Assembly: GCF_000150275.1 (NCBI RefSeq)
Contig: NW_002060968.1
Coordinates: forward strand, 167,797-231,796
Reading direction: 5' to 3'
DNA from: Trichoplax adhaerens
Lineage: Eukaryota; Animalia; Placozoa
Length of the DNA stretch: 64,000 nucleotides
Below are positions 2,455-21,844 of this stretch, one piece after another. The translations under genes were made by a program, and so were the position numbers. The stretch's first letter is position 1; each line of letters opens with the position of its first letter. The notes beneath the pieces were generated by a model. That model had not been told where the DNA came from. It made no database searches and saw only the letters and a list, made by a program, of their open reading frames with translations.

Positions 2455-4049
2455 TTAAATCTTGACCATTCTTATACTGCTTTCAACTGGCATGAAACCC
2501 AAATTCTCATTAATTAATAGAACTTTCCCATCAGTATAAAAGCATAGCAACTTTTTACCATCACTTATATTAACTAACAATTGGACTTCGGTCGATTCAC
2601 AATATGGGTGATTTGGGCTATATGGCTCAGAGGAATATATAATAAATTCCCAAAGAATAAAATCTTTGTTTTCTCTATTCCATTTCTTAAAGGTTTCTAT
2701 AACGGTCTTTATATCGTCATTCAGTTTCTGTAAACCACCAATTAATCATTTTAGATCATAAAATGGCCGTGTAAACGACTAAAAGTTCTTATGTTGATCA
2801 ATGGCACTTATTCGAGAGATATTATTACATAGCTAGCAGACTACTACTAAAATCATAACATAAAATATATTTTCGATATACAGAACCATAGAATGATATT
2901 TTGCTATGTTATAATAAGCAGCGTAATAGCTCCAAAAATTTGATTCCATTTACTATATATTTGCAGAATATGATTATAAACCTATTAACCGTCTTTTATA
3001 TTAAATTTAATCTTCCGTAGAAATAATAGTAACAATATATTTACGTACTGTAATAATGAACAGTTGCAGAAAAATTTGACTCCCATAACACAAAATTGAG
3101 CCATTTTTTCGTCTAAATCATTTAGCAAAGGTCTTGTAGCGTCTCTAACTATAACTTGATGATTATTGTAAGACAATAAATAATCGTATATATTCACTGA
3201 TATCGCCATAGTATCTTGTCTTAGTAAGTAAAATACTGCAGATATACCTAACTACTCGGTAGATTATTTTCGTTGTAAACTTACCACAAAGATCAACTCA
3301 TATTCAGATTTCTTTATTTTCTTCATGCACATCATCAATTTGGGATCAGAAGTTAGAATAACCACAGAGTTAGCTATGTCCTCAGATTTGAATATAAATT
3401 GAGCTATGGTTTGATTGATAAATTGGAAATTGATCAGGCTCTGCGTAATAAGAAACTGTTTCAATTCAATTATTAATCTATAGCTGTTAGGAATAGTATT
3501 TACCGCAGCTGGGCTTTTCCTCAAGTTCATCCAATCCTTTAGCATATTTAGCAGTATACGCTGTAAGATGCTTGAAATTAAATTCGTGGTCGCTTTGCGC
3601 TAAGTAATAACCCAGCGAATTAAGATATACTTTTGTTTGGGTGCTGGCAAATTCTGAAACGATATTTTTATCATATCAAGCCACATGTTGCTTAATCAGC
3701 TATTATATTGCAACTGAAATGCACTGAATTCATAAATTCATAATTATACATGTAAGATTTTTCCTAAAAAGTGTAGTATTCAATCTGCCTTCATTTTATA
3801 AAAAGTGCAATTTGAAATGCTGTTGATCATTGTTGACAAGGTATGTTAAATAATACGATTCATCTATATATTTTTAAAGAAATTGAAGGTTACTTGATTA
3901 AAATCAGCAGCAGTAAGAGCAATTTACTATTAATTTAGCCAAATTAGTTACGATTTGCCAAATTAGCTTATCTTTAGAAAATAATGGATCAACTTTTTTG
4001 GGGTACAAACTAAATAGTAAACCAATTTACCTTTAGAAAAATTTTCCAT
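2455..4049 (-). CDS. Paralog A: leaderless beta-trefoil (IL-1/FGF-superfamily-like) protein, 186 aa, 4 exons
   Basis: Exons 4049-4031 (aacaacATG; MENFSK, g|gtaaat), 3653-3504 (phase 1/1), 3403-3285 (phase 1/0) and 2727-2455 (phase 0, TAA). All introns are GT-AG and the 561 nt are fully open: MENFSKEFASTQTKVYLNSLGYYLAQSDHEFNFKHLTAYTAKYAKGLDELEEKPSCAQFIFKSEDIANSVVILTSDPKLMMCMKKIKKSEYELIFVKLNDDIKTVIETFKKWNRENKDFILWEFIIYSSEPYSPNHPYCESTEVQLLVNISDGKKLLCFYTDGKVLLINENLGFMPVESSIRMVKI. The gene model is well supported by its paralogs; the fold call is pattern-based inference. Confidence 0.8.
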
Positions 4050-5984
4050 GTTGTTTAATTTGGTACAGAAAGTAAGCTGATATCAAACCAAGTAAAGTTA
4101 AAGGAGATAGGCGACGAAATTGATCTACTTAACCCGCTAATTAAAATCTTGATTGAAAAGGCAAAATTAGAAAGGAACGACCCTCTATTTATAATAATTT
4201 CATTTCCAAGTATTTCAGTACAAGGCTTTTAAAAGATCAATACGGCAGTAATAGAATAGCATATAATTTTTCAAAATATTTGCGTAACGAAATAATACGC
4301 GTATTATTTTAATAAATAACAAGATATTTTAGAAATTCGTTTGCCTTATTTTAATTTCTTTTCTTCTGGAATAATTTGTATAGTAAACGTAAATAAAGTA
4401 GTTTAGGTGCTAATTTTATTTAATGTTCTAAATATGTCACATACTTGCAAACTACAATGGTCAGAAACAGAGGATATACATCGCATGATAACGTTAAGAT
4501 CGATGATCATTTTAATGACCGACAGCCAATAAATACGGGCGTATGATTATTTCTATTCTACGCTTAACATTGTATCTAATTTAATTGGTTTTATTGAATT
4601 CCTTTTTACGAAGCTGAAAAAAGGCATGTCTATAAAATAATAAAGTTAGGAGAAAAAATCACTGTGAAATGTCGTAATTGTGTCAATATTTCCAAAACTT
4701 AATTGTTTGTAATTAGTCGTAGGCGGTCAATTTTCCCTTTGCGAGTATAACAGCACCTAAAGTTGCTTTAATTTTAATTTAATATAACTATCACTTGATA
4801 CTGAAATAGAATTAGATTAGTATATTTATCCGCATACTGGTTAATCCTATTTTAAGCCAGTAATGAGATCATGATAAGTATAGCAGTGATACAATCCCGA
4901 TTTATGTCAAAAACTGTCGCAAAAATAATGAATTAACACAGACTATGTGAAGAATACTATCTAGCTAGCAGCAAATGGAAAACTGCTGATGATGTATCAA
5001 ACTTCCTCATTAGTAAATAGGAAAATAATTTTCTATAGTCTTAAATGGTCATAGGATAACATCAATTTCATGGTTCGATTGTAAATTAGCTAGATGAATC
5101 ATAACTGACATTAAATATATAGCATATTCAAATTTGGCAAAAAAAGCTATAGGATTTATTATTAGCAGGCGTAGCAGTAAGTTAGTCGGTTACTTTATTT
5201 TCGAAAATAACCTCAATCTGAGAAAGGTATCTAGGGAAGTTAAAAGAATCATTAAATAATAATATAATACAACTCACACTCTATCGTTAATATGGCTAAC
5301 ATTACGTATACTAAAAGCACGTAAAGGAATTTTTTTATCGAGATTAGCATTATCTTCGATATTGCGTACATTTCATCCTTCATTAGATTCTTAGATGAGA
5401 TTTAAAATTAAAGAAAAATGTTTTCATTTAAATTTTCTGCCGCTTTTGGTCTTGTGCAAACAGTTGGCTACCGATGTTTTAAATGGGTAATTACATTTCT
5501 TTTCATCCTTTTAAAACTTTGATCGCTTTATAGGAGAATTATAGATATGTTATTAAAGTTAATGAATGGATTTGCGCAACTAATATGAAGGCATATGGAT
5601 ATATCCTTTAAACGAAGAGAAATAGTGATTGACAGAGAATAAATATAGAGAAAAATGAAGAACGAAAGGAAAGAACTAAATAGGCAAAGATATCGATGAT
5701 GTTGATGGATTTTTTGTTAAATAATTAAATAGTCATGAACAAGCTAATGATTTCAACGCCACTCTCGCTAGATAATCTCCTAGAACCGCTTCTAGTTCAT
5801 AAAGAGCTAGAGGATTCGTAAATATAGACATTGTTTACAGTCAAGTCAACTCAAAATTCATTGGATAGGAAATAAATTAAAAGAGTTGCAATTTAAACTC
5901 CAAATAATTACAAACCTTTTTATAATACTTATGAAAGTTCATCAGGTTCATTTACAGTGAAAGTTAGCTAGATTGATCTATGCA

Positions 5985-7509: not shown

Positions 7510-9082
7510 TTAATCCTCGACCAAATACACTCTACTTTCAGGCGGAAGATAATTATCTTTTAGATTGATAAATTGGACTGTTCCATCAGGATTAAAGCAA
7601 ACGACCTTCTTACTGCCACTTTGTGTTTCGATAAGGTTTAATTCAGTTGATCCATCATCTGATTTGCTGTATTCGAAGATGAATTCCGTGATCAAGTTAA
7701 TGCCAGTTGCTTTTTTTCACTTCCTTCAATTGTTTTGAAAATGATTTCATATCTTCATTGACTTCCTGTATCATAGTAAAAAAATAGAAAGCGATCATTT
7801 AGATTATCTCATTTATGTTATTTCAGCATGAAACTTCCATAATTGGCTTAGATATTTTTTCATTGCATTGCAATATTCTAGTCAAGTACGAAATTAAAAT
7901 TTAAATTTACACGAGCTCTTGATTAAACTGATCTAAATATTATTTTTTATGCAATTTATCTATAGATCAATTAAAAGCATTGAGTGTTAGACTCGCGCAA
8001 ATTATTTCTCTTCTTCTAACTTACCACAAAAAGCAATTCATATTTGTTGCCCTTTATTTCTTTTAAACCAAGTACACGTTTGTTATCAGATAATAAGACA
8101 AGAGCCCAATAGGAATTGTCGTATTCTTCAATTTCAAATTTAGCTGTAAATTGAAAGGACAAAATTTCTGCTTAGTATTTATATGAAATATGTGTAACTT
8201 CCGTCCCAATTTGATTAAAAGTCGAATCTAAAGTACAGTAGAATGATCAATTTCAGATATTTACCAAATTCAGCCTGTCCATCAATGCCATCTAATCCGT
8301 CTATCAGATTAGATTTGTACACAACGAATGGCCCAAGAGTATCCTTTTCACTTTTACTTATTACGTAGCCGCCGATTGATCTCACCAAGAATTTTTTCGG
8401 AGTAACACTGAATCTCTGTACAGCATTGGTATAACCTAAAATTAAAACATTCTTCGTATTAATAACTTATTGCTTTTGAAGTCTACTCTGTTCTCTATTT
8501 TTCTTCATCATTTGATAATGCTACCAATAAGATTAAAAGTTCTTACTCTTGCGAACGATCTTAAAAAAGAGCCTGGAAAATTCAATTATGTTTGCGACAA
8601 TTGTAGCAAAATAATGATGATAATTCTTCCGTTCTGCGTAGAAAAGAAATGGATACTTTAAGAACGAGTTATACAAAGCTATGGCTAATGAGACAACACA
8701 AAATTAAAGGAAGATCAGTTAAATTTCATGATATAGATTGGGACTCATCTTGATTAAATAAAATTGTACTGCTTCCGCTATTTCTGTTTATCTAGTAATA
8801 TCGTACAGTTAAAGCAATCTAAATTTTACTATATTTTTGTAAATATATTAATTTAATTGATTTCTCGTTTAAAACAATTGAAAAGTTTACGCGTATATTG
8901 CATATTTAGTAATTCACTAGAGACATTTAAACACGCAGAAAAAGTATATTTGTCTTCTTCTGTTTTAGACTATCTGAATAGAAGGATAGTTAATTATTAT
9001 TCAGTCGTAGGAGTTAGCTTAAAATTATTAATAATACCTGATATATTATGGATTTACCTTGCAGTACTTGTACGTGGCCCAT
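7510..9082 (-). pseudogene. Paralog B: beta-trefoil IL-1/FGF-like gene with a single +1 frameshift (sequencing error or recent pseudogene); 189 aa if corrected
   Basis: Exons 9082-9058 (MGHVQVLQ, g|gtaaat), 8435-8265 (YTNAVQRFSVTPKKFLVRSIGGYVISKSEKDTLGPFVVYKSNLIDGLDGIDGQAEF), 8143-8025 (119 nt; AKFEIEEYDNSYWALVLLSDNKRVLGLKEIKGNKYELLFV) and 7765-7510 (256 nt). Removing one A from the A7 run at 7711-7717 gives EVNEDMKSFSKQLKEVKKATGINLITEFIFEYSKSDDGSTELNLIETQSGSKKVVCFNPDGTVQFINLKDNYLPPESRVYLVED*, colinear with paralog A. Confidence 0.75.
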
Positions 9083-12253: not shown

Positions 12254-13704
12254 TTAAACTGCAGCTAAATTCAATACGCATTGAGTTGCAATTTGACTAA
12301 CAACAAAATCTGATAAATGAGCAGTTGCGTTCTGATCGAAATATACCGAATTTCGAGATGTATGCTGTGATGTATCGCCAACTGTAGAACCATTCACTAA
12401 TAAGCAAACTTTAGTAAAATCAGAATTCGGGCTTGGCGTATATAGCTGGAATAAGCAAATAATATTCATATTAATTTTTTTAATTTCTTTTTCTAAAGCG
12501 TCTTTACTTAGAAATGGAGGTAATTCCTATAAAGAAGCAAAGACGAAAATTTAGATTTAGTATACCAAGAAAAGAAATTTTATTACATGATTTTATAGTT
12601 AATATAGTATAGATTTTTTAACAATCGTTATCTCTTATATTGATTAATCAAATTTTGCTAGACCTCTTTCTTTTCTCAATTATGATTTAATATTATGGGC
12701 AATTTTAATAAGACACACGAACAATAATAGAACAGTATTCGTACATTCTGTCGTTTAACCCAGCCAACCTGTCTTGTAACTTTCAAATAATTATCATTTC
12801 TCTACTAATGCTAGTTTTTGTACTAATATTTTAGGTATTACCATTCCTGTACTGTCTTAGAGACAAGGCTTTTATCAAGTCGTATAACTTTCTTTAGCCG
12901 GTCAGAACTACGACTATAACTACTATTGATGATGATAGCTTCTCCTTATACCAAATAGCAATGTTCTTCTAATTTTTGTAGTACTGTTAGTAAAATTACT
13001 ATTCTGGTTCTTAATTTAGTTTTATTATACACAAAGCATGCTCATATCTCTCATAAAATTAATAATTTTTTATTTAATATGGCTATCGCCACATTGAAGA
13101 TTCCTTATTAAAAATAAATGTATCGCCATAGAATTGAACGTCGGTTTTATTTTTACGATCAGTAAGGTATTATTTTTAACACAAATAGTAGAAAATAATT
13201 TAAAAATATATTATGTTAAAAAACATTATCAGAACTTACTGTAAAGATAATATTAAAATCATCTTTTCCTTTGCGCTCAAGGCCAAAGACTGCTCTTCGA
13301 TCAGATCCCAAAGTAATATAGCTATAAGTATTATCTATGTCCCAAACCTGGTAACGAGCTGATGATTGGAATTTGTAAAGTAAATAATCCTTTCAATATT
13401 AAGATTTTGAATTTGCATTCATACAGTGTATGATTTCCATCTAGATATAACGCCTGTAATTACCGTATCTCTATCTGTTTTACTATATCGCCTTTAGATC
13501 ACCATAAACTGAAAGTGAAGATTTAAGAGATTTGATTATTCTATCAACAGTTCTTACTTTCCGCTAAATTTTGATCCACTTCATCGAAGGATTTGGTATA
13601 AATCGCACTATAAATAATGTACCCATGATCAACGTGAGTATTGCTAGTGCAAGCTATAAATTGACCGGAATTTTCTAATGCGATTCCTTCATATTTAGGA
13701 GTCC
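12254..13704 (-). CDS. Paralog C: beta-trefoil IL-1/FGF-like protein, three core exons (first exon uncertain)
   Basis: Exons 13704-13558 (phase 1/1; TPKYEGIALENSGQFIACTSNTHVDHGYIIYSAIYTKSFDEVDQNLAE), 13358-13240 (119 nt, phase 1/0; RYQVWDIDNTYSYITLGSDRRAVFGLERKGKDDFNIIFT) and 12526-12254 (273 nt, same length as in A; ELPPFLSKDALEKEIKKINMNIICLFQLY...TQCVLNLAAV*). Candidate phase-1 start exons at 15264-15228 (MPTEEDNLPSTT) or 16650-16623 (MNRIVSSKT). Confidence 0.75.
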
Positions 13705-16700
13705 CTAGAATAATTCACATGGTAGAAGCAAAACATATGATATCCACGTTAATAAAGTTTGATTATGACAATGGAGCAGTTATTAATGGCTATAGCAAAA
13801 TAAAAATTAAATTATACGTTGATTAGGTACAGCAGCCGCTTCGCCTTTGGCTGAATGCCAAATTGAAAACATTTAAATATAGCTGTTCATTAAATACCCT
13901 TTAAGCTGGTTATTATATGCAAGTATTTAAAGTAGCCTCGCTACTATATAACTCTTAAAATCATAGATATAGAATGCGATGCTGTCTATCTCTATAATTA
14001 AAAGTACTGTACTTCGATCAAGATATTAGCGTGGAGTGAGAATGCTAATTTGTGCTAGACTGAATCCTACAAGCACATAGTCTAGTGCTTATGTAATACA
14101 TGATTATTAATCAAAGATATCGCGACAAAGCCTTTTGATAAAATTAATATTACTGCAGTTTAGGCTACAAAGCACTTTTTACAAGTATGTTGTTGCTACT
14201 GAAAGAAGCTATAAATTTTTTCTAGTCTAATTTGACTTGATAAAATGATTCTTAATCTGCTATAATTCGATTTTATACTGTTCTAGTATGGTAGTATTTC
14301 GTTGATATTATAAGACATTTTAATATTATGGCAATTTACAAGCATTAATGAATCTAGTGGTAGGCCATAAGTTATTAGTAGATTTCTCGATCTTACTAAT
14401 TTCAACTTCTATCAAACAGCATTTGATAGAGTGAGCAAGCACGGCAATATTCGGTCAATTTAGTGTAGATAAATACAGTCTATTGATGGCTTATCACTCT
14501 ATCATGATTCATCATATACGAAACTGTTATGATGGCATTTCAACGACAACTAAAAGAATGGTGGCCCAAAGATTATTCATTTGTAGACTAACCCTTGATA
14601 TCTTCACAACTACATCCAATAAGATACTGCTTGGTTGAACGAAAAAGTTATATCCCGATATATGTGCGCACACCAATAGACAAAATAAGATTCTTGATAG
14701 CTTTATAACAACATGCGTTCTACAAAATAAGCCTATTATAGCACTTTAGCTACCAACAGGATCAATATTGACTGTATTTTTACCATTTTTAATTTGAAGT
14801 ATGTTAGAGACAGCGACCGGACTTTTTGTGTTATAGACTATTATCAATATTATTGTATTTTATTAATATTCAGTCGCTTAGCGGTAGTGTACGGTTAAAT
14901 TAGACAGATGATAGCAGTGTTCTATTGGGCAACTACAAGATTTATTAGCTAAACGTAAAGAAAATGGTCGTTATGTTAAAATTTGATATAACTGAGGATA
15001 AAAGTGTACATTTAATCAACAGGCTTGACTTGGGCTTTAGTCGCGTTGTATTTTGTTATTACTTGATTATAATGTAATACAGTATCTGACACATCAATTT
15101 CCGGACTAATTCTATTCCCTTTCACAATCGCCGGCGGAACTTTAAATTTTTAAACTGACGAAATTAAATTATTTTGGCATAATTGAGGAACATTTCCCGT
15201 TTCTAGTCAAGCAATAATATCACCTACAAGTTGTTGATGGTAGATTGTCTTCTTCTGTCGGCATATTGGGTAAGAATTTGAAGTTTTCGGAAAGAAAATG
15301 CCACCACCGTTATGTTTGAACTACCTCCTTTAAATAAACGGTAAACTTCAAATATATGGGATTTCGTTATCGTTTGATTTTATAGACATATGCTGATGAT
15401 TTTCTCTTCAAATAATAACATGCATAATCGATTGTACCATTACAGGAGAAAAGAAATATCAACAATAGTTGTAGTGGTAATTGCTTTTATTTATTATAGA
15501 CGATAGAAGAATGTGATTTGCTTTGCATTGTTGGCCGCCAGCGTGTGGTAGCATTGGCTATAGAGCGATTTACCTTTAACATAAGCAAGTATATTCTGTA
15601 AAATGTCGTAGTTATCATAAGCGTTGATTCATTTCTACTTCAATTATTGGAATCATTCCAGATACTATTGCATTAACGATCGGCTTAGTTGTGACGTTAT
15701 GACAATCAGCGTTGAACCTTCTATCACTTTTTGAAGGTAAAAGGCCTTATTAATGTAGGAAAGACTATCGATAGAGCTGTACGGTGCAGTATGCTCTGAA
15801 GGTTTTCATTTTATTACTTCATTAAAGATAGATAATAATTTCCAGTTAATGATGAGTTCCATGTACTATGATTCAATGCAAAATGGTAATTAGCTGACGT
15901 AATTGGTGTATTCGGCATTCTACAAAGGTGATTACTTAATTATATTTTTTTCATTGTATGCATAATAGATCAAACTTTCTAAAGTACAAATTTATTTGCA
16001 TCGTTTATCCTAATAGGATTATCGAAGAACGATTGATGACGAAATACGAGGGTGTGAGTGACATATTTATTTTCCCGTGAAATTAATTATTTACAAAGTA
16101 TTCTTTGTGCTTATCATCGCTGATAGTTGTTTAATATTTATGCTATGACAATAATTAATCAAATGCCTGTATTCAAGTTGGACGGTAAACTACTCACCAT
16201 TGCACAGCTTTTCACATGTCTATTACATATGTTTCTGCTTTATGATAGGTTTAGATTCTTTGCTAAACATAAATCAATAATTATTGTATTGCATTAATGC
16301 CAGAAGCGATTTCAAATGTCATGTTAAATGAACTTAAGATAAATTTCATTTGGTTTTGTTCAACTTCATGAAGAATATCTGTAAAGTAAAAAGTAAATCT
16401 AATCTTTAATACGAATTCCTTCGTATTAACGCTTTTTCCCTTCTAGTAACATTAACGGAACCATAAATTTATCATGGAGAAACTGTATTTAAAAAATATT
16501 CTATTAAACTTTTCCTGACTTAACGCAGTATCTAACATCACCTACAGAGTGTTGGCTGATCGCCACTTCTTGAATTGCGCTTATTTTGGTCTTCTGACTT
16601 TTTCTTATTAGGTTTTTAATACCGGTTTTGGAGGATACAATCCGGTTCATTCTTACGACTTGCTGCAGCTCAAACTTCCTACTTGCGATGCTACATTACA

Positions 16701-19100: not shown

Positions 19101-21844
19101 TTATACGCTGACTTTAGCTAAATTTAATATACACTGAGTTGGAAGATAACCTATAGGACAATTTACTAGATGAGCACATACTTTATCGCCATCGTTCATA
19201 TTTTCATCATTATCTACATGATCATCAAAACAAACCGTATACTGGATTGACTTATCACCAATTTTTTTTGCCACTCGTAAGCACAACCTTTGAAAATTAG
19301 CGTTACTAGAAACCAAATATAAATCGAATAGGCAAACAAAATTCTTGTCGTTGTTAATTTTCTGGATCTCCTTCAAAACCTCTTTTACACTCGTTTTATT
19401 CAGACGCTGGCGAAAAGCAAGTGTAATATAATTCAGGATGCTAAATGATTCATTTCATTTATTTATTAGAATAAATTATTTAGAGTAGCTGATGCTCTTA
19501 TTCTCATTATTACAGTATCCTATCTAAAGCTTACTACTACCAATTCTTTTATTGGCCTAGTTTACAAATAGCTATTACAGGAAATATAAATTGCATGTCG
19601 ACTCTGTTTTGCTGTCAATAAGCTAACACTCTGTTCAATTTATATAACTGCTATTTAAATATGAAATCGAAGAAGTCTTACTCTAGTCTACGTACCCTAA
19701 ATACTACATCATAATCATCATCTGATCCACCTTTTTTATGTTTAAGACAAAAGATGGCTGGTGGTATTTCTTTATCGGCAATAGATCCAAAAGTAATGCA
19801 ACTTTTCCATGGTGTTTCTTGCATGGATTTATCGTCGACTAGGAATATTTTCGAAATATGGTAACGAGCTGGTAATTAGTAATAGAGAAGAATAATTAGT
19901 GTGATGAGAATGTCAGTTATATACTTTGTACGGATTCATCAGCTTTATAAATATAATTCTGAGATGGTATAACTGTAAGAATTAATTTATGGCTAGGAAT
20001 AAATGATATTTTCAAGCAGTATATTCAACTACCATTATAATACTTACGAAACGATAGCTTTTATGAGTATCTGATATGATATTAATAGCATTTTTCCTAA
20101 CTTTTATACGGTCATTAAAGCCAACTTTTACTGAATTTGACAATATATATGCGTATAATTGTATATAAGTACTACAAGTTGCTTTACGTAATTTTACCTT
20201 AACCGATACACAGCACGAAGTTGATAAACTCATTAATATTAAGCTATGTGTAGATAACCAGTTACTTCTAATTACTATTTAGTATTATATAATTAGCTTA
20301 AATCACTACAAAAATATATCTACTTCTATTAGTTCAGTTATATCAAATATTAAAGTATGTCCAGATGATAATAGCATAGTGATATAAAGAAACTGAATTA
20401 TTCTATCTTTAAGTCTTACTTGAATCAATATTGGCATCCAAATAATCGAAGCGTTTGACATACTTTCCGTGGTAAATACCGTAGGTTCCATTTACTTTCT
20501 CATTGCTGTATGCAATAAATTTACTTGAATTTTGCAAAAGGACTTCCGCATGTTGAGATTTATCTTGGATAGATCGTTGGGATAAATATCAATATGATAT
20601 CAGATTAAAAAATAGATTGGTACAAATGTTATCTGTCAATCGGAAAAGCAAGGTGGTGGTCGATTATTGTGATATGTGTACAGCCTAGCCATTCAGATGT
20701 GTCTCGATCTCGAATCTACAATAGTTGGTTATTACTACATTACAGTACATTTTCAAATGATCATCTATGATATGCTCGTATGTCGGTATTTTAAGTATAC
20801 GTACTACTGCGTCTAGTTTGTAAGAGTATTTAAAAGACCTGAAATCTGAGGTATACTTGTTGCAGTTAAAAAGACATGGAGTAAAAGCTGCATGTCTATG
20901 ATTGAAGCTATAGCTACCATGACCCTTTTTACTTGATGTTATTCGTTGAATTAAAATTTAAAAGTATGCTAAGCTGAATACCGCAAGTGAACTGGTATTT
21001 TCCGGACACCTTTAGAATCTAAGACTAATAAGATTAACTAATTTGACGGTAGTTTACGAGAATAACATAGCAATATTTTAATAGGCATTGTCCGGCTTTC
21101 TAGCATAATAACGGAACAAATATCGATGGATTTAAGTCTTAATTATTGTACAATAGCTTAAATTTATTTCTACTTTGATTGTAGAATTTGTTAGCAATGG
21201 AAGATGCTTAGTTTTATGGAATTATACCAATACGTAAGGATCTGTTGATCAATCATAATTATCAGAAAATGAATTTGAGGTAGATTGGAATATATTATCG
21301 TCAGTTCATCTTTGAGTTTTATTGTACAGCCAAATTGTTATTTTATTGCAATTTATTATTTAATACGAATAATTCCAGATTATTACTGATATTCTTTCAA
21401 TGTTTCTAAAGAACTATAAATTTATCTTGGAAAAATTAAAATCATTTTATTCTATTTTATAATTTTTCCTGTTAAAATTAATATCTAATATAACCTACAA
21501 CTTAATGATTTTGATAATGGCTGCTCTGGCAAGTCCTCGTCTTCTGATCTATGAGAGGTAGAGTCTAATCTTTCATCGGGGACTCCCGCTAGGAAATACA
21601 ACAACATTCTTATAGACTACCACGGGCAACTCCTTCATATCATTTAATTCTTACATTTTTTTTTCAATGTTGTTGACAGAACTGTAAATTTATCTTGGAG
21701 TAGCTAAAATAATCTTAATATATTTTACAAATACCTTCCGTTTAAGTTTAATATATTATATTCCTTACAAGCAGATGTATTTTCCAACGTATTTCCGATA
21801 GAATCTGGTGTGTCATCAGAAGTTTGAGTAGGTGAAGAGGACAT
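19101..21844 (-). CDS. Paralog D: beta-trefoil IL-1/FGF-like protein with acidic N-terminal extension, ~262 aa, 5 exons
   Basis: Core exons 20563-20420 (phase 1/1; KSQHAEVLLQNSSKFIAYSNEKVNGTYGIYHGKYVKRFDYLDANIDS), 19868-19696 (phase 1/0; RYHISKIFLVDDKSMQETPWKSCITFGSIADKEIPPAIFCLKHKKGGSDDDYDVVFR) and 19406-19101 (RLNKTSVKEVLKEIQKINNDKNFVCLFDLY...YLPTQCILNLAKVSV*). Phase-compatible upstream exons 21844-21769 (MSSSPTQTSDDTPDSIGNTLENTSA) and 21588-21499 (GVPDERLDSTSHRSEDEDLPEQPLSKSLS) are less certain than the core. Confidence 0.72.

Follow-up and report, generated by a model that had tools for sequence, protein, structure and literature searches.

Whether the interleukin-1 (IL-1) and fibroblast growth factor (FGF) families share an ancestor, or whether their beta-trefoils arose independently, has long been open because the sequences are uninformative on this point; even within the IL-1 superfamily, independent origins have been argued (Rivers-Auty et al., 2018). 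Intron positions offer evidence that does not depend on sequence, and a cluster of genes in Trichoplax adhaerens raises the question of whether they can serve here. The cluster lies in a 64,000-nt stretch of DNA with a G+C content of about 30% (contig NW_002060968.1, positions 167,797 to 231,796; hereafter, the window) and includes four paralogs on the minus strand, genes A to D. A first-pass annotation of the window had proposed that all four carry the intron arrangement of IL-1 and FGF genes, that is, a phase-1 intron just before predicted strand 1, a second phase-1 intron just before strand 4 and a phase-0 intron at the end of strand 7. The intron pattern is borne out in the four paralogs, with RNA backing for genes A and B and annotation backing for genes C and D. 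The codon split by the second intron is of the form x/CT in every case (encoding Ala in genes A and B but Thr in genes C and D) and is followed by QF, KF, RY and RY, respectively. The motifs quoted as preceding the third intron are also present on the minus strand at the sites given for them: YELIFV at 3285-3302, YELLFV at 8025-8042, FNIIFT at 13240-13257 and YDVVFR at 19696-19713.

Gene A (TRIADDRAFT_61702) encodes a database protein of 186 aa (P0002), which maps exactly onto it in four coding exons separated by three GT-AG introns. Exon 1 (4031-4049, 19 nt) opens with the start codon, comprises six codons and one base, and ends in a phase-1 donor; transcript contigs extend the 5′ untranslated region to about 4147. 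Intron 1 (3654-4030, 377 nt, phase 1) interrupts codon 7, eight residues upstream of predicted strand 1. The exon encoding strands 1 to 3 (3504-3653, 150 nt, residues 7-57) is followed by intron 2 (3404-3503, 100 nt, phase 1), which splits codon 57 as G/CT (Ala) immediately ahead of QF, two residues upstream of predicted strand 4. The exon encoding strands 4 to 7 (3285-3403, 119 nt, residues 57-96) ends in YELIFV, and intron 3 (2728-3284, 557 nt, phase 0) follows codon 96, between this motif and the next residue, K, at the end of predicted strand 7. The last coding exon (2455-2727, of which 2727-2458, 270 nt, precede the stop codon) encodes a helix and then strands 8 to 12. Positions 2727 and 3653, which had been noted as the limits of the feature, correspond to the 5′ ends of the last exon and the strand-1 exon, respectively. 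RNA evidence was obtained as spliced transcript contigs from three runs (X5, X6 and X7) belonging to three different studies, and all three gene A joints (3653/4031, 3403/3504 and 2727/3285) are reproduced exactly in each of them. A fourth run also spans the gene A introns, without any of the gene A joints, and looks like DNA or unspliced material.

The core of gene B (7510-8435, minus strand) comprises exons at 8435-8265 (171 nt), 8143-8025 (119 nt) and 7765-7510, with the phases of gene A, and its joints 7765/8025 and 8143/8265 are seen in the same spliced-contig runs. In this assembly the frame of the last exon is shifted at a run of seven A (7704-7716, near 7710), with a stop after KKSNWH. 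The seven-A run is also present in runs X1 and X6, whereas the spliced contigs of X5 and X7 have one A fewer and read on to YLVED; the frameshift either marks a null allele that is segregating or comes from a homopolymer error. As gene B has no database protein and is frameshifted, its exons entered the analysis individually and were not joined. Gene C (P0001, XP_002117706, 191 aa; 12254-15264, minus strand, mapped by peptide) has exons at 15264-15228, 13704-13558 (147 nt), 13358-13240 (119 nt) and 12526-12254. Its first intron interrupts codon 13 (phase 1), its second splits codon 62 (phase 1, A/CT, Thr, ahead of RY) and its third follows codon 101 (phase 0). For gene D (19101-21844, minus strand) we followed the annotation of P0003, a 262-aa protein entry from Trichoplax sp. 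H2: two N-terminal exons near 21844-21770 and 21577-21500 precede exons at 20563-20420 (144 nt), 19868-19696 (173 nt) and 19406-19101, and of the two core introns one interrupts codon 104 (phase 1, Thr ahead of RY) and the other follows codon 161 (phase 0). The strand-4 acceptor of gene D is provisionally placed at the annotated site, which would yield Thr-Arg-Tyr as gene C does, rather than further downstream at tcctag/TC.

The introns were then placed on predicted structures. The AlphaFold model of gene C, built from 13 rows that include separate exon pieces of gene B and of a related gene on metagenome contig L029, has a predicted local distance difference test score (pLDDT) of 76.2 and a predicted template modelling score of 0.74, all five models scoring between 70 and 76, and shows 12 strands. 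For gene A, with seven sequences, a weak model was obtained (pLDDT 58, only one of the five models being above 45). Judging from these models, the family proteins are beta-trefoils, and we count the fold as confirmed. In the gene C model, the intron in codon 13 precedes strand 1 (residues 19-22), that in codon 62 lies three residues upstream of strand 4 (65-70), and that after residue 101 falls at the last residue of strand 7 (95-102). The corresponding values for gene A are codon 7 and strand 1 at 15-18, codon 57 and strand 4 at 59-65, and residue 96 and strand 7 at 90-97. Both models accordingly place the introns where the first-pass annotation had put them. The exon layout can be written as strands 1 to 3, phase 1, strands 4 to 7, phase 0, strands 8 to 12, with a further phase-1 intron upstream; a helical insert of 10-14 residues separates strands 7 and 8 in both models. 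Only 6-12 residues precede the trefoil exon in genes A and C and in the paralog F described below, and gene D has an acidic N-terminal extension. An N-terminal hydrophobic run is found in none of the family proteins, which have no signal peptide. FGF1, FGF2 and FGF11-14 (the FHFs) are leaderless as well, and so are some invertebrate and fungal trefoil lectins; the missing leader fits IL-1, FGF1/2 and the FHFs, yet equally cytoplasmic lectins.

The same arrangement extends beyond the window. To its left on the contig (C1389) there are two annotated paralogs, P0010 (gene F) at 149.5-150.7 kb and P0005 at 156.1-156.9 kb; gene F has exons of 19, 150, 125 and 291 nt, with the phases of gene A. A dispersed paralog on contig C1414 (stretch 11809500-11818500, at about 4025-5003 of that stretch, minus strand) has the same three-exon core, its middle exon ending in AIFL followed by gtaagt, a phase-0 donor. 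The two core introns are common to genes A to D, both left-hand paralogs and the dispersed copy, and the first intron is present in all but copy E; spliced maps are exact for A and F and at the peptide level for C, D and E. Genes A, B, C and E share a middle exon length of 119 nt, whereas this exon measures 125 nt in F and 173 nt in D. A local profile scan gave weaker matches on the same strand near 120.5, 130.1, 138.5, 143.3-144.5 and 164.7 kb of the contig. The family thus has no fewer than seven members with this exon layout, one of them dispersed, and at least four weaker copies further left, the tandem array amounting to about eleven genes. Related genes with this layout were also found on two European Nucleotide Archive (ENA) environmental metagenome contigs of about 32% G+C, L029 (31.6%) and L033, presumably derived from another placozoan lineage in the sampled material; that on L029 has a 119-nt middle exon which starts x/CT-RY and ends in DILFI before gt. 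As the layout is kept in the paralogs, the dispersed copy and the metagenome relative, it is ancestral to the whole placozoan family, and its conservation among the four window paralogs is unsurprising by itself. When 1.84 billion representatives were searched with a profile, and in two further, word-indexed searches, only placozoan family members and low-complexity proteins were returned. The genes are expressed members of a placozoan-restricted family, and their products are small single-domain proteins of about 19-30 kDa.

We next compared the layout with those of the cytokine genes. Exons 5 and 6 of human IL1B measure 165 and 131 nt, which puts one intron of the mature protein in Val40, immediately ahead of strand 4, and the next behind Glu83, where strand 7 ends. 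In FGF2, one intron interrupts codon 60 and the other comes after codon 94, at equivalent strands. In IL-1beta, where an intron also precedes strand 1, this lies about 20 residues upstream in an unalignable region; the upstream phase-1 intron of the placozoan genes agrees with IL-1beta in phase only, and it has no counterpart in most FGF genes or in the ancestral FGF layout. The middle exon is 104 nt long in FGF genes, 119 nt in placozoan genes A, B, C and E, and 131 nt in IL-1beta. The intron phases of IL-1beta are II, 0, I, I, 0, with all 12 strands in the last three exons (PMC4880838), and the placozoan family, whose trefoil also occupies the last three exons with phases 1, 1, 0, agrees with it at the phase level. 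The two core introns are of phase 1 and then phase 0 as in FGF genes as well: in FGF5, exon 1 contributes 364 coding nt and exon 2 measures 104 nt, giving phase 1 and then 0 (PMC2754481), and the amphioxus FGF genes all retain two internal core introns that are held to be ancestral (PMC11733497).

With the human introns placed in this way, the two core introns equal those of IL-1 and FGF in phase and would lie, structurally, within about 1-3 residues of them. Assuming random placement in a domain of about 150 residues and ordinary phase frequencies, we roughly estimate the chance that both introns fall within three residues of given sites in the right phases at 1 in 1,000 to 1 in 3,000. The intron argument for homology is real and moderately strong, and it is incomplete. 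Intron phasing as evidence is not new: human and cnidarian IL-1 genes agree in the phasing of two central trefoil introns according to the IL-1anc paper, where this already serves to argue for homology (Fontenla-Iglesias et al., 2026; PMC13736523), and the main text of which mentions neither placozoans nor Trichoplax. In the literature searched, no description was found of the placozoan family or of its simultaneous intron match with IL-1 and FGF.

Ricin-B trefoils of the same genome were used as a control. A cluster of exons encoding ricin-B lectin domains is located at C1412:626000-656000. On the 126-position profile, the Trichoplax ricin-B exons span roughly positions 38-89, and the clearest of them (L035 and L036) end in NQLW(L/M)H(E)K followed by gt. 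Their cut falls after the QxW of the middle repeat, behind strand 8, the last strand of that repeat, and thus one strand later than the strand-7 cut of the placozoan family. The comparison with ricin-B genes that had been suggested for the intron claim was thus run, and same-genome ricin-B exons are cut elsewhere than those of the family. The companion comparison with fascin was uninformative, since a six-frame search with PF06268 found no match anywhere in the genome.

Taken together, the data agree best with descent of the family and of IL-1 and/or FGF from one intron-bearing "cytokine-type" trefoil gene, which is the most economical reading and to which we assign a probability of about 0.5. 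The components of the homology proposal fared differently: the beta-trefoil fold, the core-intron phases of IL-1beta and FGF and a cut distinct from that of ricin-B all stood, and a sequence link to the cytokines did not appear. We may reasonably infer, beyond the results themselves, that the genes keep the structure of the IL-1/FGF common ancestor.

A number of observations weigh against such common descent. Pfam scans of single exons and full proteins detected nothing relevant, a profile search of PDB sequences gave chance matches only (expect values above 0.1), and six-frame searches of the Trichoplax genome with PF00340 and PF00167 gave no match. The IL-1 signature, the (F/L)ES motif of strand 9 and the FGF signature are absent from the family proteins, in which neither a PDZ domain nor an IL-1 propeptide is found by Pfam. 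Structural comparison is equally permissive. The ESM Atlas returned no usable match, Foldseek E-values were weak (best, 3.5e-3), and in the structure search lectins, Cry35, CWRC, fascin, IL-33 and an FGF-1-derived design all fall within about 1.5 Z units, CWRC, Cry35, the lectins and fascin being level with or ahead of IL-33, IL-1alpha and the FGFs; with the predicted models used here, structure does not tell cytokine trefoils apart from those of lectins. Some trefoil lectins and inhibitors are likewise cytoplasmic and leaderless, and the human introns were assigned to their sites before strand 4 and after strand 7 from exon sizes and strand limits. Among the reading frames of at least 90-110 aa scanned within about 80 kb on each side, none corresponds to GCC2, ESD, TRAF3 or an IL-1R-like gene. 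Finally, the FGF receptor (FGFR) is held to be eumetazoan in origin and absent from Placozoa (PMC7260276), and no placozoan TIR protein is reported to have a transmembrane segment (PMC6321704).

An alternative is an independent placozoan trefoil family, for instance of cytoplasmic lectin- or inhibitor-like defence proteins, in which the introns coincide with those of the cytokine genes by chance or by parallel gain. In its favour, no sequence or motif tie to cytokines was found and no cognate receptors are reported in placozoans, and both the fast-diverging tandem arrays and the frameshift of gene B, if segregating, would suit defence genes. R-type and cytoplasmic trefoil lectins have the same fold and equal or slightly higher structural scores. 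However, the family proteins show no QxW or other threefold repeats (there is a single Q.W, in gene C only) and no match to PF00652, the ricin-B genes of Trichoplax have their exon boundaries at other sites, and a double match in position and phase is improbable by chance (about 1 in 1,000 by our own estimate). We consider an independent origin possible, though on balance somewhat unlikely.

More specific affiliations are harder to sustain. If the genes were divergent IL-1 members, that is, IL-1anc-type genes after loss of the PDZ domain, they would be expected to look much as they do in architecture: a 12-strand beta-trefoil in the last three exons with the full 1, 1, 0 series, central introns before strand 4 and after strand 7 (as placed above for the human genes), no signal peptide, tandem lineage-specific expansion, an acidic N-terminal extension in gene D and, between strands 7 and 8, a long helical insert at the site of the long loop of IL-1. 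The PDZ domain is moreover missing from some invertebrate IL-1anc proteins (PMC13736523). Unlike the IL-1 family, the placozoan genes have no detectable sequence similarity to it, including the signature, (F/L)ES and PF00340 evidence given above, no PDZ or propeptide domain, and no GCC2/ESD/TRAF3/IL-1R synteny among the long reading frames scanned; their host phylum is reported to lack receptors combining immunoglobulin, transmembrane and TIR segments, and placozoans do not figure in the main text of the IL-1anc paper. Membership of IL-1 proper is quite doubtful. Membership of the FGF family, as divergent relatives of leaderless FGF1/2 or of the intracellular FHF type, appears very improbable. 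It would account for the trefoil, the missing leader and the two conserved core introns, phase 1 then 0, around a short middle exon, and a large BLTP1 (Tweek/KIAA1109) gene (about 31000-60000 of the window, minus strand) adjoins the cluster, KIAA1109 and FGF2 being in one mapped region in the horse (PMC8532986). This synteny lead gained no further support, three other human 4q27-28 markers (the Trichoplax Sprouty, HORMA and annexin genes) sitting on other contigs. In contrast with FGF genes, the family has no PF00167 match or FGF signature, middle exons of 119-173 nt rather than 104, an extra phase-1 intron before strand 1 that is outside the ancestral layout, and a helix between strands 7 and 8, and FGFR, taken as eumetazoan in origin, is not known in placozoans.

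Under descent from a common cytokine-type gene, an ancestral trefoil gene with phase-1 and phase-0 introns would have given rise both to the placozoan family and to IL-1 and/or FGF, and repeated tandem duplication would have let the placozoan copies diverge past sequence recognition. Speculatively, the proteins may be cytosolic, stored and released unconventionally as signalling or defence factors, as IL-1 and FGF1/2 are; if they do signal, the receptor would have to be other than a canonical IL-1R or FGFR. A bolder version, which we regard as unlikely, would make the family a direct and little-rearranged descendant of a single leaderless trefoil gene ancestral to both IL-1 and FGF, with an exon layout older than the split of Placozoa, Cnidaria and Bilateria and older than both receptor families, and with alarmin-like products released without a leader, for example upon cell damage or through placozoan gasdermin pores.

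The shared introns hint, without proving it, that the cytokine families have a common ancestor which predates their known receptors. If common descent is correct, a cytokine-type trefoil gene would already have existed in the ancestor that placozoans share with cnidarians and bilaterians. Its presence in an animal reported to be without FGFR and IL-1R-type receptors would then raise the question of what such ligands did first. The question of shared ancestry can be tested by projection of the introns onto structures, as exon limits are established for at least seven genes that are expressed or annotated.

The remaining observations concern the surroundings of the cluster. Between genes A and B, at 5332-5607 of the window, one X1 contig skips 274 nt with the non-splice ends TT and CC, probably reflecting an insertion/deletion variant or a repeat collapse. 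Judged from long reading frames over about 80 kb on each side, the neighbours of the cluster are, besides BLTP1, TPR/NPHP3-like, ROC-COR and G-protein-coupled receptor genes and Gemin5. Large single-exon genes with TPR/NPHP3-like repeats and ROC-COR domains recur on both flanks (C1389:87-98 kb and 261-292 kb; L013, L019, L026 and L027), and two of the ROC-COR frames, of 737 aa each, have near-identical Pfam scores.
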